A DNA stretch of 64,000 nucleotides from Epiperipatus broadwayi (lineage: Eukaryota > Animalia > Onychophora): the NCBI GenBank assembly GCA_028023455.1, contig JAQFVV010000007.1:1984001-2048000 (forward strand), in the 5' to 3' direction. Shown here in pieces: positions 42,859 to 57,899 of this stretch. The notes under the pieces were generated by a model that saw only the letters and a list, made by a program, of their open reading frames with translations, had not been told where the DNA came from and did no database searches. Numbering within the stretch: position 1 is the first letter of the stretch; every line of letters starts with the position of its first letter. Both the position numbers and the translations under genes were made by a program.

Positions 42859-43191
42859 GAACACCATCATCACAAACCTTCAGGAAAACACAACAAACCT
42901 TGAGGAAAACACACAGATATGTAAATGGTTAGATATTCCATCAATTATTTGTTTTTCTGTCTATCAATTTATTTATCAATTCTTACATTTATCTATTAAT
43001 CTAGCTATCTATTTACCCACCCATCTGTTCATTTACTAACAATCTATCTACCTATATATATATATATATATATATATATATAGATGGAGCTTTACCAAAA
43101 CCTCCAAACAAGCATATTTTTATTTATTTAAACATATTTTTATTTATTTAAACATCAGAGTCAGAATTCACCATCTTTTTCATTGGCTCCA

Positions 43192-43237
43192 CCTTCAGAT
43201 CAGCTGATTTCAAGCTGATTTGCTATCACCAGTGAAG
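43192..43237 (-). ncRNA. Hammerhead copy, family A, core mutated (CUGGUGA)
   Basis: Reverse complement of the family A motif with A6 to G. Confidence 0.7.
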
Positions 43238-43834
43238 AATAGGAGTTAAAAACTAGACCTAAACACTAACTCCAAGTGTTTATTCAACAAGTTCCTATCA
43301 GTTTGCAAGTATAAATATTTCAGACACGTAAATGTCTTCAAACCCAGCCTAACAAGCTAGATAGCTATATGGGTCTGATATCAGTTCAGTTTCAGCACAT
43401 AGTCAAAGCTTCTGCAATATATATCATTGCAAGAAACTTCAAAGGTACATTTATAAAAAACAAAAACAAGTTATAAAAATGTAAAGTTGCTATTCCTTGT
43501 ATTTATGATCAATAGATGGAGCTTTACCAAAACCTCCAAACAAGTGTATTTTTGTTTACATAAACGTCAGAGTCAGAATTCACTGTCTCTTTAGTTGGCT
43601 CCGCCTTCAGATCAGCTGATATATATTGCAATGATATGTATTGCAATTATATATATTGCAGAAGCTTTGACTATGTGGTGAAACTGAACTGATATTGGAC
43701 CCATATAGCTATCTAGCTTGTTAGGCTGAGTTTGAAGACATTTACGTGTCTGAAATATTCATGCTTGCAAACTGATAAGAACTTGTTGCATAAACACTTG
43801 GAGTTAGTGTTTAGGTCTAGTTTCTAACTCCTAT

Positions 43835-43881
43835 CCTTCACTGATGATAGCAAATCAGCTTGAAATCAGCTGATCTGAAGG
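43835..43881 (+). ncRNA. Type I hammerhead ribozyme, intact core (family A)
   Basis: CCTTCA-CTGATGA-T-AGC-AAATCA-GCT-T-GAA-ATCAG-CTGAT-C^-TGAAGG; predicted cleavage after 43875. Confidence 0.88.
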
Positions 43882-44216
43882 TGGAGCCAATGAAAGAGAC
43901 AGTGAATTCTGACTCTGATGTTTATGTAAACAAAAATACACTTGTTTGGAGGTTTGGTAAAGCTCTATCTATTGATCATAAATACAAGCGATAGAAAGTT
44001 TATGTTTTATAACTTGTTCTTGTTTTTCATAAATGTACCTTTGAAGTTTCTTGCAATGATATATATTCCAGAAGCTTTGACTATGTAGTGAAATTGAACT
44101 GATATCAGACCCATATAGCCATCTAGCTTGTTAGGCTGGGTTTGAAGACTTTTATGTGTCTGAAATATTCATGCTTGCAAATTGATAGGTGTTTAGGTCT
44201 AGTTTCTAACTCCTAT

Positions 44217-44263
44217 TCTTCACTGATGATAGCAAATCAGCTTAAAATCAGCTTATCTGAAGG
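44217..44263 (+). ncRNA. Hammerhead copy, family A, probably inactive
   Basis: G12 to A (CTTAAAA) and a stem III mutation. Confidence 0.7.
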
Positions 44264-44628
44264 TGGAGCCAACGAAAGAGACAGTGAATTCTGACTCTGA
44301 CATTTATGTAAACAAAAATATGCTTGTTTGGAGGTTTTGGTAAAGCTCCATCTATTGATTATAAATACAAGCGATAGCAATTTTCCATTTTTATAACTTG
44401 TTTTTGTTTTTCATAAATGTACCTTTGAAGTTTCTTGCAATGATATATATTGCAGAAGCTTTGACTGTGTGGTGAAACTGAACTGATATCAGACCCATAT
44501 AACTATCTAGCTTGTTAGGCTGAGTTTGAAGACATTTACGTGTCTGAAATATTCATGCTTGCAAACTGATAGGAACTTGTTGCATAAACGCTTGGAGTTA
44601 GTGTTTAGGTCTAGTTTCTAACTTCTAT

Positions 44629-54086: not shown

Positions 54087-54753
54087 ACAGGAATTTTAGA
54101 AACTAGATCTAAACACAAACTCTGAGCGTTTATGAAACAGTTTCTCATAAATGTACCTTTGAGGCCTTTCTAGCAATGATTTATATTGCAGAGGCTTCTA
54201 CTATGTGGTGATTCTGAACTGAGATCAGACCAATGTAGCTATCTGGCTTGCTATGCTGAGTTTGAAGACATTATGTGTCTAAAAGATTCACGCTTGCAAG
54301 CTGAATAGAAACTGTTTCATAAACGCTCAGAGTTTGTGTTTAGATCTAGTTTCTAAAATTTCTGTCTTTCACTGATGATAGAAAATAGCTTGAAATCATA
54401 ATCTGAAAGTGGAATTAAAGTTAGAGATAGTGAATGCATGCTCTGATGTTTATGTAAACATACGCTTGACGGTGTTTTTGGTAGAACGCCATCTGTTGAC
54501 ATAAATACAAGCATTAGCAAGTTTTTAACTTGGTTTTTTGTTTTTCATAAATGTACCTTTGAGATCTTTTTAGCAATGATATATATTGCAGAGGCTTCTA
54601 CTATGTGGTGATGCTGACCCATGTAGCTATCTGGCTTGCTATGCTGAGTTTGAAGACATTACGTGTCTAAAAGATTCACGCTTGCAAGCTGAATAGAAAC
54701 TGTTTCATAAATGCTCAGAGTTTGTGTTTAGATCTAGTTTCTAAAATTCCTGT

Positions 54754-54797
54754 CTTTCACTGATGATAGCAAATAGCTTGAAATCATGATCTGAAAG
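54754..54797 (+). ncRNA. Type I hammerhead, intact (family B); mutated copy at 54366-54409
   Basis: Same 44-nt motif on plus. Confidence 0.86.
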
Positions 54798-54946
54798 TGG
54801 AATTAAAGTTAGAGATAGTGAATGCATGCTCTGACGTTTATGTAAACATACGCTTGACGGTGTTTTTGGTAGAACGCCATCTGTTGACATAAATACAAGC
54901 ATTAGCAAGTTTTTAACTTGTTTTTTGTTTTTCATATATATATAGT

Positions 54947-55430
54947 AAATAAAATCAAGTCATACATCATGTGACTTAATTTGATAAGCTTGTATTTTAT
55001 AAAACAAAAGAATGATCATGGCTAGAGCTATTAGCATGCTCATTATTTTATTTAATAAAATACAAGATTATGCAGTTAAGTCACTTGATGTATGACTTGA
55101 TTTTTTATTATTTTAGTTTTGTTTTTAAGTCTGAAGAGTTTCAGAGCCATGTAGCTATTTAAGTTAGATAGCTGTATTTGAAGACATATAGGTGTCTGAA
55201 AATTTCAGATTTTCTACTTAATAATTAAGTATCAAATAACTGCTGGATTTGAGTTGGTATTTTGGATCTAGTGTCTGAAATATCCTAGTGCCTCACTGAG
55301 GATAGCCAATAGCTTGAAACCATTTTGGGGATGGGGATGTTTTTCCATTGAGATTTTGAATGCTTTCTCTTGCAGGATTCATCAATAAAGCTTGGTTAGA
55401 GCTGTTAATCTGCTCATTATTTTATTTTAT
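54947..55430 (+). mobile_element. Older diverged relative of arrays A/B: ~160-bp hairpin (54947-55110) plus one unit with a degenerate hammerhead (~55291-55335)
   Basis: catgtagctat...ttgaagacat...gatctagtgtct shared with A/B; CCTCA-CTGAGGA-TAGC-CAATA-GCTT-GAAACCA. Confidence 0.65.
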
Positions 55431-57043
55431 ATATATGTTATGAATGAATAACTATGCAATGGTGAATAGTTTCTGTTGCTTGCTTATTTTATTATTTAGA
55501 GTGCTTTTATTTTGTAAAAGAATGTGTGTGAGTGACTTATGGAAATAATTCACAGCTGAAAATTAAAATAGTTTTAATTTTTAATATTTGTATGAACAGT
55601 ATAAAATATGAAAATTTGTAGCATGTGCTTGCAAAAACCACAGAGTTAAAATTTCTTCTTTCATTACAGTGAATAAAATAGTTAATCTTTGTAAATACAC
55701 ACAGTCTTAGTTTATAATAGTAATTTTTATTAGTTGAAGAGTATAATGCAAAAATATACATGTCAAGAATGTTTAATTAACAGTGAAAATTATTTATGAA
55801 TTGAATTAATTGATACAATTTATTTTTGATAACTCTTTACATAAAAACGAATGTTCTAAAATATAAAATTAAAATTTACAATCAGAAAAACATTACAGTC
55901 TTGATATCAACAAGCTAATTAAGAACTTTAAAAAATTAAAGAGAAAAGTAAGAAAGTCTTAGATTTGGAAAAAAAATTTTTTGATCAACAGTTGGGTAGT
56001 GATGTAAAAAAGCTATGAAAAGCAGTTCAAGGGAAATTCAGTGATGGTGTTAAGGAAATCAAATCTAAGTTCTACACAATATCTGATGGTGCATGAACAT
56101 TAACCCATCTTTAATGAGTAAAAAAAGAAATGGTGTTGAATTGGATGTAGAATTACATCTTAGAAACCAAAGAGTAAAGTTAGATAGATTATAATTGTAA
56201 TGCTAAAAAAAAGACTTCTCTGAATTATATCTAGTAAAATTGTCAAGGAGGGATCCCTAAATGAGTCAAAGAGCATATTAAGATTGCAATGAAGACCAGT
56301 AAAATGGGTTCTTTTAATCTATGGCATAATAATTGTATAGCATCTATGTTTGATATTCTATTATTAAAAAAAATATTAATTGGTAGACCTCTTAAATTTA
56401 TTTTAAAAAGAAAATCAAAATATTTGGGTTCCAGATACCAATCTTTGAATTTTTTAATAATATAAATTTTACAAAACAATTAATCTAAATCAGAATATAT
56501 TCTTCCATTTAGTTTTATTCACTATATCAAAAGATTCTCATTGTAAATTTTGGGAAAAAATATAAAAACTGGATGAATGTATTTTAAAACATAATTTACT
56601 AAATTTTTAATAAATTTATTTTCAATTGATGATGGTGTATCAATAAGTTCAATATAAATAGAATTTTGGATAAATAGATATAAAGTAATAACTTTACACA
56701 TCTAATGTTAAAGTTTTTCTTTCTTAAATATAATTGTATTTTTCTACTGAAATTAGAAGATAATTTTGTAATATAGATTTCATTGTCTTAACAGAAAAAT
56801 TGGGAGAAAATCTCAGAACATTTTGAGAAGTGTGGAAGAGGTCAAGAGGAGAGAAATTTTATAAGAATTCTTTCAATAGATGATTTGTCTCTATTAAAAT
56901 TAAAAGAGACGCTCTAAAATAATTGTTTAGAATTACAAAAAATCGGGAAAAATATTTTTTTGAAGGAAGAAAAATGTAAGAAATATGTATGATTAGGAAT
57001 AGGAATGTGGACACCAGAAAATTTGTTGTTAATATCTATAAGC

Positions 57044-57569
57044 TAATAAACATCACATGATCACCATCTCTTATGCTTGCTTATAACTGTTATTAAAACA
57101 AGCAAAACTCTTTCTGTGTATTGCCACTCAGTGCAAGCCAGAGTAAACAATGGATGCCAGAAGTATGTGCATAAAATCCCCATTTAGTGCCTACTCATCC
57201 ATATCCCCAGCGGAGTTTTTGGCTTATGACATTCCTCAGTGAGGAGCCTTGGATCTGAGAGCACTGCATCTAGATCTTATGATCTAATGCAACCCTCCAG
57301 AAGCCACCTTTTATCTCTACTTAACTACAAAACTATGAGTCTTAAATTGAAAACACTATAATATTTTCAATCCAATCTCATTAGCCTTTCTAGGTGCAGT
57401 GCTCTCAGATTCAAGGCTTGTCACTGATGAAGGCCACAAGCCAGAAACTAGTCTGGGGATATTGGATGAGTAGGCACTAGATGGCGATTTTATGCACAAG
57501 CCTTCTGGACTCCACTGATTACTCTGGCTTGCACTGAGTAGCAATACAAATAGAGAGTTTTGCCCATTT
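57044..57569. mobile_element. Fold-back element D with hammerheads and a 14-bp TSD
   Basis: Arms ~57090-57274 / 57389-57574; TAATATCTATAAGC at 57030-57043 and 57570-57583. Confidence 0.85.
57421..57456 (+). ncRNA. Minimal type I hammerhead (family D); degenerate mirror at 57207-57243
   Basis: TCA-CTGATGA-A-GGC-CACAA-GCC-A-GAA-ACT-AGT-C^-TGG. Confidence 0.7.
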
Positions 57570-57899
57570 TAATATCTATAAGCAGATGATTAATATAAAT
57601 AATAAAAAAATAAGTCATTTAGAGGAGAGCCTTGTGGAGTAAAATTATGATGAGGAGAAATAGAATTATGATGAAGGAGACTGTAGACAATTCTTTATTA
57701 AGTGTAATAAGAATTTGTTATGTAAGAAGTAAGTTTGCAATGATATAGAGAAGAGATATTGAGATATGAGTTGATAAAGTAATTCTAGAAATTTAATCCT
57801 AGAAACTGAGTCACATGCAGCTGTAATATCCAACTGAAGTATTTATTAATGTCTCTGATTTCCTGTGCTTCCAAACTTCATCTGTGACAATTTTCAAAA

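Follow-up and report, generated by a model that had tools for sequence, protein, structure and literature searches.

We analysed a window of 64,000 nucleotides (nt) from the onychophoran Epiperipatus broadwayi (assembly GCA_028023455.1, contig JAQFVV010000007.1, positions 1,984,001 to 2,048,000 of the forward strand; positions below are counted from the first letter of the window). Over a span of about 14.5 kb, this window contains six or seven insertions of short non-coding elements that carry hammerhead ribozyme motifs. We consider it highly probable that these elements, which are about 370-460 nt long, are retrozymes of the kind without long terminal repeats (non-LTR retrozymes), in other words non-autonomous elements that derive from Penelope-like elements (PLEs) or parasitise them, and that they were inserted by the PLE route. 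They are a well-preserved example of a type already described in animals, and the type, its ribozyme and its link to PLEs have all been published. The evidence consists of hammerhead motifs far in excess of expectation, a common two-armed insertion anatomy that resembles that of PLEs, and a conserved, strongly self-paired unit RNA. An earlier note on this DNA had proposed a retrozyme-like system mobilised by PLEs, and its individual claims are taken up below where the results bear on them.

Hammerhead motifs in the window

Motifs were sought with a strict scan, which required the core CUGANGA, a stem II hairpin of at least 3 bp with one core-adjacent mismatch permitted, GAA followed by an A...U-closed helix III of at least 2 bp and then H, and a stem I of at least 4 bp. 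Expectations were derived from 100-200 shuffles of the window. The scan revealed five motifs (43835-43881, 51499-51542 and 54754-54797 on the plus strand, 50876-50919 and 54043-54086 on the minus strand) compared to 0.01-0.025 expected. Using criteria fitted to family D (stem I of at least 3 bp, palindromic helix III of at least 3 bp), six motifs were found versus 0.0 expected, and criteria fitted to family F (stem I of at least 5 bp, helix III of at least 1 bp) likewise gave six versus 0.02. The bare core pattern without stems is not rare (22 matches versus 8.9 expected, with 22 reached in 2 of 100 shuffles) and the signal therefore resides in the stems. The hammerhead motifs are real.

All of them have the type I layout, in which three helices surround the core and helix I is open, with the 5' and 3' ends in stem I. 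The core C3-U4-G5-A6-N7-G8-A9...G12-A13-A14...A15.1-U16.1-H17 is intact in the copies starting at 43835 (A), 54043 and 54754 (B), 50876 and 51499 (C), 57421 (D) and 55291 (F); degenerate copies show core changes such as A6>G and G12>A. Stem I comprises 5-6 bp in families A, B, C and F and is weak in D, where 3 bp and 2 bp are separated by a mismatch, and stem II comprises 3-4 bp. In families A to D, helix III is a loopless palindrome (AUCAGCUGAU in A, AUCAUGAU in B, AUACGUAU in C and ACUAGU in D), which can form only between two copies. Cofolding of short hammerhead RNAs gave the expected dimer with a 10-bp helix III for family A only and was not discriminating. The 10.1/11.1 pair is non-Watson-Crick throughout, with U.U in A, B, C and F and A.A in D. 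An extra nucleotide flanks the core on both sides, forming a 1x1 mismatch; by our reasoning, a register with a bulge only would leave at most 2 bp in every family. Among natural hammerheads, U10.1.U11.1 has been documented as an active variant (PMC3088659).

Families A and B are 77-80% identical and F is about 70% identical to them, so that on sequence comparison A, B and F are grouped as one superfamily, from which C and D are separate. Of the five to six families counted in the earlier note, about three (A/B/F, C and D) can therefore be regarded as independent, in addition to a doubtful family E. In the E motif, stem II is set off from the core by a 3x2 loop, helix III reads AUGU and not ACGU as noted earlier, and the other arm carries G12>A. 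Since motifs of this quality are expected 0.06 times per window, we regard it as suggestive. The coordinates given earlier for the motifs of A, B (both), C, D and F, including core and stems I and II, were confirmed, as were the predicted cuts after 43875 and 54791, and we found seven copies beyond that list, most of them degenerate (Table 1). The earlier statement that stem III is palindromic in every family holds for A, B, C and D; family F departs from it with a helix III of 1 bp and the loop CCAU.

Sub-threshold Rfam matches to microRNAs (miRNAs) and small nucleolar RNAs (snoRNAs) were traced to palindrome hairpin centres or to a UGAUGA/CUGA resemblance to C/D boxes. A C/D-box snoRNA reading of the motifs was rejected, as this resemblance is absent from families C and D.

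Anatomy of the insertions

All six insertions are two-armed, with the 3' ends of the element directed outward, the 5' ends joined centrally and the hammerhead sense strand reading outward. Each of them contains an inverted 5'-truncated copy by the 5' end, and partial tandems are present. The orientation of the motif and its place within the insertion are constant across three unrelated sequence families, and these families (A/B/F, C and D) share the same architecture, including the palindromic helix III and the 1x1 core-adjacent mismatch. The units are non-coding, with no Pfam-matching open reading frame (ORF) inside, one hammerhead per 374-460 nt and a GC content of 0.30-0.41. In insertion A, the unit period is 382-412 nt and the inverted arms are 91-92% identical, whereas units of 388-399 nt and arms of 96-99% identity are found in insertion B. 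The tandem units within single arms indicate that the template was longer than one unit.

The positions at which the arms end are regular. In each of insertions A-D, the distance from the last cut site to the arm end is 98-118 nt in one arm and 145-166 nt in the other; it is 106 nt in F and 147 nt in E. There are thus two alternative 3' ends, separated by 34-51 nt. The plus arms of A and B stop at the same unit position (...TTTTTCATA). According to the arm alignments, the minus arm of insertion C has an extra tail of 42-44 nt (50726-50767) and that of insertion D a tail of 34 nt (57044-57077).

The targets are (TA)n for A, B and F, and AT-rich sequences with target-site duplications (TSDs) of 14 and 15 bp for C and D. 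Insertion A lies inside (TA)n, with (TA)15 at 43053-43082 on its left and tatatatata from 44828 on its right. Insertion B is flanked by TA repeats on both sides inside a (TA)n tract, and insertion F lies between TA runs of the same tract, directly adjoining B. The arms of insertion C, each about 430 nt long, are flanked by the 14-bp duplication TAAATGCATTAAAA at 50712-50725 and 51642-51655. For insertion D, we found the exact 15-bp duplication TTAATATCTATAAGC at 57029-57043 and 57569-57583.

Table 1 Hammerhead copies and two-armed insertions in the window. Cut positions are predicted; pairs such as U.U denote the 10.1/11.1 mismatch.
Feature	Position	Strand	Details
Family A hammerhead, intact	43835-43881	+	stem I CCUUCA/UGAAGG; U.U; stem II AGC/GCU; helix III AUCAGCUGAU; cut after 43875
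Family A hammerhead, degenerate	44217-44263	+	G12>A; helix III palindrome broken
Family A hammerhead, degenerate	44629-44675	+	stem II, helix III and 1.1 pair altered
Family A hammerhead, degenerate	43192-43238	-	core A6>G
Family A copy truncated at helix III	43604-43620		forms the arm junction of insertion A
Family B hammerhead, intact	54754-54797	+	stem I CUUUCA/UGAAAG; U.U; stem II AGC/GCU; helix III AUCAUGAU; cut after 54791
Family B hammerhead, intact	54043-54086	-	identical to 54754-54797
Family B hammerhead, degenerate	54366-54409	+	stem II C>A; helix III palindrome broken
Family B hammerhead, degenerate	53644-53687	-	stem II C>A
Family C hammerhead, intact	50876-50919	-	stem I ACCAA/UUGGU; U.U; stem II UGCU/AGCA; helix III AUACGUAU; cut after A at 50881
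Family C hammerhead	51499-51542	+	helix III AUACAUAU, one change off palindrome; cut after 51537
Family F hammerhead	55291-55330	+	stem I CCUCA/UGGGG; U.U; stem II AGC/GCU; helix III 1 bp, loop CCAU; cut after 55325
Family D hammerhead	57421-57456	+	A.A; stem II GGC/GCC; helix III ACUAGU; cut after 57453
Family D copy, degenerate	~57203-57245	-	in minus arm of insertion D
Family E hammerhead-like motif	48821-48865	+	doubtful
Insertion A	43080-44827		minus arm ~43080-43620, ~1.3 units; plus arm 43621-44827, ~2.9 units; joined at 43620/43621
Insertion B	53548-54936		minus arm ~53548-54145, ~1.5 units; plus arm 54140-54936, ~2 units
Insertion C	50726-51644		minus arm 50726-51195; plus arm 51211-51644; central loop 15 nt
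Insertion D	57044-57568		arms 57078-57274 and 57389-57568, 83-85% identical
Insertion E	48512-49008		arms 48512-48732 and 48788-49008, 96% identical; 55-nt spacer; symmetric
Insertion F	54951-55431		inverted arm 54951-55020 versus 55035-55104; plus arm to 55431, ~1.1 units of 374 nt
Possible seventh two-armed insertion	47774-48040		related to family C 3' part; no hammerhead core; central (AT)43

The arms of the possible seventh insertion are 72% identical over 79 nt to the family C region 3' of the cut site, and their 3' ends are directed outward. Its central (AT)43 may have grown from an AT-rich helix III or junction. A sub-threshold MIR7533 match at this place corresponds to the hairpin of the inverted arms. 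Similarly, sub-threshold miRNA matches occur on both strands at 51146-51260, including mir-7563 with 57 bits versus a gathering score of 80; a miRNA gene was rejected here, as the matches represent the centre of the family C palindrome where the arms meet.

Two insertions show further peculiarities. In D, the inverted arm homology runs on across the TSD copy (57078-57092 versus 57570-57584, 12 of 15 positions). Possibly, the DNA from which the minus arm was copied already held the target, or else the 3' end of the element resembles it. In B, a 12-nt indel and the stem II C>A change in the next hammerhead co-occur in both arms, which hints at a two-unit template with only every second ribozyme intact. 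Pairwise mismatch counts for such a two-unit (alpha-beta) template gave no clear separation, and it was dropped as evidence.

The hammerhead insertions are confined to 15 kb of the window that are rich in microsatellites; the remaining 49 kb hold none. An (ATAG)n microsatellite of about 88 copies occupies 45310-45658, and further AT-rich simple repeats lie between the insertions. Single-armed copies of the family E 3' module with a common 3' end were detected at 42560-42850 (plus strand) and 29505-29690 (minus strand). They contain TACTAAC-rich tandem repeats of 20-42 nt, with no adjacent hammerhead core. A search for a transfer RNA-like head, as in short interspersed nuclear elements (SINEs), found none (ARAGORN).

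Folding of the unit RNAs and conservation of pairing

Cut-to-cut monomers of A (412 nt) and B (388 nt) were predicted to fold with -113.1 and -107.7 kcal/mol, corresponding to z = -4.75 and z = -4.0 relative to dinucleotide shuffles. In the predicted fold, stem I extends into a long imperfect helix and the hammerhead caps a branched rod. We aligned five monomers (three of A, two of B; mean column identity 88%), whose consensus structure has 121 pairs with 96.8% of the cells paired, compared to 34-44% when slid. Between the A and B consensus, 28 pairs differ, and 22 of these keep pairing (6 compensatory, 16 compatible, 6 broken). Slid controls, in which the 3' partner was moved by 1-3 columns, contained 0-1 double changes and 22-31 broken pairs. 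This pattern points to selection on RNA pairing in the A/B units.

The compensatory change in stem I between A and B reported in the earlier note was recovered as C-G to U-A (alignment columns 5/377), and stem I of F (CCUCA/UGGGG) has a further compensatory double change relative to B. Helix III differs between A and B (AUCAGCUGAU to AUCAUGAU) by a symmetric 2-nt deletion, which preserves the palindrome.

Search for a Penelope-like element

We searched all 126 stop-to-stop ORFs of at least 62 amino acids in the window against Pfam. Reverse transcriptase (RT) matches were confined to a piece at 4368-4853 and weak RT and protease matches near 36-37 kb. The former is an open frame on the plus strand that matches RVT_1 (E = 8e-18) and in which about 22 residues round the FADD box are duplicated internally. 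We take its boxes GxxQGDSISPKLF and FADD to be of the type of long interspersed nuclear elements (LINEs). The latter belong to a series of short open frames at about 35600-39250 on the plus strand with weak aspartyl-protease and RT matches, which is probably a decayed LTR-type retrotransposon. The RT matches are thus just of LINE and LTR type, with no GIY-YIG match, and the decayed PLEs that the earlier note had placed in the window were not recovered. As the elements have no ORF for an RT with a GIY-YIG endonuclease, they can be at most non-autonomous. Since no PLE remnant was found among these ORFs, we infer a PLE driver from the anatomy of the insertions alone.

Copy number in public data

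Copies outside the window were assessed in assembler contigs of four small public runs, for which the library type was guessed or unclear. Families C and B/F reached a summed word depth of 10^3 to 8x10^4 in these contigs, whereas the depth of the intervening unique DNA was about 0. Such a contrast would be expected of abundant RNA as well as of high-copy DNA sequenced at low coverage. One contig links 51635 back to 51213, as in a head-to-tail family C unit of about 460 nt. The family C tail continues as the start of the next unit, as judged from the loose-end consensus of other copies and the joining contig, and the C unit is therefore about 460 nt long and arranged head-to-tail elsewhere. Such contig joints are compatible with tandem DNA or with circles. 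Family C 31-mers were present in runs of at least nine organisms with a falling share, and the family is therefore common to relatives. According to these data, related species hold many copies. Two exact-pattern scans of metagenome contigs, for the family C and the A/B hammerheads, found no extra copies for the covariation analysis.

Discussion

The anatomy of the insertions closely resembles that of PLEs. Their insertions comprise partial tandems, often with an inverted 5'-truncated copy at the 5' end, have a tail of 30-40 bp at one end only and are biased towards microsatellites, including (TA)n in Naiads (Craig et al. 2021, PMC8557442). A purified PLE protein cuts and extends both DNA strands, prefers AT-rich DNA and starts reverse transcription from two internal RNA sites, and the interval between these sites corresponds to the tail (Frangieh et al. 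2024, PMC11167929). In that study, reverse transcription starts 111-118 nt into the ORF and the hammerhead cut lies 26 nt into it, which by our own subtraction places the start about 85-92 nt past the cut. The insertions described here share the partial tandems, the inverted 5'-truncated copy, AT-rich or (TA)n targets and signs of the extension of both strands. Further common features are reverse transcription starts roughly 100 nt 3' of the cut site and a tail on one side, of about 30-40 nt, whose length corresponds to the interval between two internal starts. The interval is 34-51 nt here versus 30-40 in PLEs. In contrast to PLEs, the elements encode nothing and would need the machinery in trans, from a PLE partner suggested by the insertion anatomy. 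The proposal of the earlier note that the elements were mobilised by PLEs is in line with this anatomy, i.e. the inverted truncated arm, the two 3' ends 34-51 nt apart, the (TA)n or AT-rich targets and the long TSDs.

The elements also agree well with metazoan non-LTR retrozymes. Animal retrozymes consist of tandem, non-coding, low-GC units of 150-450 bp, each with a type I hammerhead, and their flanking TSDs exceed 4 bp (Cervera and de la Pena 2020, PMC7229834). Their self-paired RNAs accumulate as circles, the hammerheads of amphibian retrozymes need dimers to cleave well, and PLEs were named as the likely drivers (PMC7229834). For vertebrate retrozymes, a derivation from PLEs has been argued from homology of the pseudo-LTRs (pLTRs; preprint 10.64898/2026.07.22.740005). 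Tandem units with one type I hammerhead, low GC (30-41%), TSDs longer than 4 bp and a strongly self-paired unit RNA are found here as well, which supports the retrozyme-like reading of the earlier note. The nearest architecture is that of the axolotl Ax353 hammerhead (supplement of PMC7229834), which likewise has U.U by the core, a 3-bp stem II and a palindromic helix III. By eye, the published coral, mussel and axolotl units show no similarity to the units described here beyond the core. Unlike the simple head-to-tail arrays of metazoan retrozymes, the insertions in the window are two-armed and inverted, and several unrelated families lie side by side. Metazoan retrozymes are expressed as circular RNA, whereas the present elements are known from genomic sequence.

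Minimal type I hammerheads with a short stem I also occur in the pLTRs of PLEs (Cervera and de la Pena 2014, PMC4209133). As here, positions 15.2-16.2 together with loop 3 are palindromic, from which dimeric action was suggested, and pairs on opposite strands are separated by a few hundred bp; numerous covarying consensus families were described per genome (PMC4209133). These hammerheads have one extra nucleotide 5' of stem II, a conserved G10.1-C11.1 pair and a stem II of 6-8 bp, in contrast to the 1x1 mismatch and the 3-4 bp found here, and the elements in the window have no RT-endonuclease ORF between the motifs.

Newt satellite 2 and the Schistosoma Sm-alpha repeats are further cases of a type I hammerhead in short tandem animal repeats. 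Their helix III is weak, as in the present motifs, so that dimers are active. They differ in having the canonical G10.1-C11.1 pair and loop-loop contacts and in being found by standard models, which the motifs in the window are not.

Taken together, we infer a cycle of cleavage, probably as dimers via helix III, circularisation, and insertion by a PLE enzyme in trans. Tandem units would be transcribed, and the minimal type I hammerhead, which cannot close helix III alone, would probably act through a palindromic helix III formed between molecules or between units. The multimer would thereby be cut into unit-length RNAs folding as a branched rod, perhaps followed by circularisation by a host RNA ligase. 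A PLE RT-endonuclease would then nick the two strands of an AT-rich or (TA)n target and use each nick to prime reverse transcription, which would begin at one of two internal sites that lie about 100-118 and 145-166 nt 3' of the cut. More than one unit would be copied from a multimeric or circular template, and the two inward-growing complementary DNAs would be joined centrally. Priming on two strands would account for the two arms with 3' ends outward, and the expected product has inverted arms, a one-sided tail of 34-51 nt, internal tandem units and 14-15-bp TSDs or (TA)n flanks.

Several observations speak against parts of this reading. Rfam hammerhead models, a search proposed in the earlier note, matched nothing in the whole window at the gathering score, in 17 kb at E<=10, or in two stretches of 86-91 nt at E<=10. 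In place of the near-universal G10.1-C11.1 pair, the motifs have U.U or A.A, and only 3 of the 11 listed copies of the A/B/F superfamily are intact. The covariation test is biased, with five monomers in two clades and a structure predicted from the same sequences. Neither a PLE RT nor a GIY-YIG remnant was found among the 126 ORFs, and no molecule-end pile-ups were listed in the contigs of the public runs. Arm junctions and arm 5' ends do not coincide consistently with the ribozyme cut site across families. Furthermore, minimal PLE hammerheads cleave poorly in vitro (PMC4209133), and hammerhead cleavage is dispensable for PLE insertion in vitro (PMC11167929).

Some of these points would suit a different role of the motif, namely as a structural handle for the PLE protein or an inactive relic in elements that move as unprocessed multimeric transcripts. 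Catalytic mutants of a PLE hammerhead left insertion unaffected in vitro, and no RNA-seq reads ended at its cut site (PMC11167929). The poor cleavage of minimal PLE hammerheads, the loss of G10.1-C11.1 in every family, arm junctions off the cut site and the constant spacing between the motif and the reverse transcription starts across unrelated families would also fit. We nevertheless regard such a role as unlikely, given that the best copy of each unrelated family retains C3, G5, A6, G8, G12, A13, A14 and H17, which are needed for catalysis only, that the helix III palindrome required for a dimeric active form is kept through the A/B indel, and that related animal retrozymes of the same architecture cleave and give circular RNA (PMC7229834). 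On balance, we lean towards cleavage as the main action of the hammerhead. It is also improbable that the copies are 5'-truncated remains (solo pLTR ends) of autonomous PLEs with ORFs elsewhere, whose hammerhead would be the pLTR motif. Most minimal hammerheads are indeed single or in opposite-strand pairs 100-700 bp apart and have been ascribed to truncated PLEs (PMC4209133), and each arm of insertions C, D, E and F comprises only about one unit. However, 1.3-2.9 units of 382-412 nt are arrayed in tandem in the arms of A and B, every unit having its own hammerhead and no ORF remnant, F has a period of 374 nt, and in C a contig joins the unit end to its start (about 460 nt), with the tail running into the next unit. 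A PLE of 3-4 kb, when cut down, would not yield such short periodic units, and A and B have kept a common structure of the unit RNA.

An origin as fold-back or MITE-type (miniature inverted-repeat) DNA transposons, with the arms as terminal inverted repeats, or as local inverted duplications would make the hammerhead incidental, and we consider it very improbable. It would be compatible with insertion E, whose symmetric arms share the same end point, a short spacer and a poor hammerhead, and with the inverted homology that crosses the TSD copy of D, which DNA-level copying could produce. In contrast, the arms of A-D end at different unit positions, so that one outer terminus does not repeat the other in inverted orientation, and head-to-tail multimers occur within arms. 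The 14-15-bp TSDs and (TA)n targets suit PLEs but not usual DNA transposons, and the motif, which always faces outward, is more frequent than expected by chance. An explanation of the motifs by chance, with AT-rich repeats happening to match a loose consensus, is hardly credible. Although the bare core is frequent (22 versus 8.9 expected) and Rfam models match nothing, 5-6 motifs versus 0-0.025 expected are observed once stems are required, and they occur in three unrelated families at a constant place and orientation and with compensatory changes.

Returning to retrozymes mobilised by PLEs, it may tentatively be speculated that the unrelated families each keep one compact module that is recognised by the Penelope RT-endonuclease. 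This module would comprise the hammerhead with its non-Watson-Crick 10.1/11.1 pair and palindromic helix III, followed by the two reverse transcription starts at fixed distances of about 100-118 and 145-166 nt. Beyond cleavage, it would double as a handle for the protein, and animal retrozymes could then be seen as the 'SINEs' of PLEs. If so, two-strand target-primed reverse transcription on multimeric or circular ribozyme RNAs would have left its direct footprints in the form of two-armed insertions with several units.

The known picture is left unchanged by these findings, which are of interest for specialists in mobile elements and ribozymes. The unrelated, well-delimited units provide material for testing dimer-dependent cleavage by U.U hammerheads and circular RNA. 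Until now, two lines of argument have connected animal retrozymes with PLEs, namely their co-occurrence (PMC7229834) and, in vertebrates, the homology of pLTRs (preprint 10.64898/2026.07.22.740005). To this, the insertions add a structural argument, as the retrozyme copies bear PLE-specific scars in the form of two-strand priming, two reverse transcription starts with a tail and (TA)n targets. The contribution of the window is thus twofold: unrelated families are found side by side in a compact set, and the distances from the cut site to the two 3' ends are fixed, a measurable regularity by which retrozyme copies are tied to the mechanism of PLEs.

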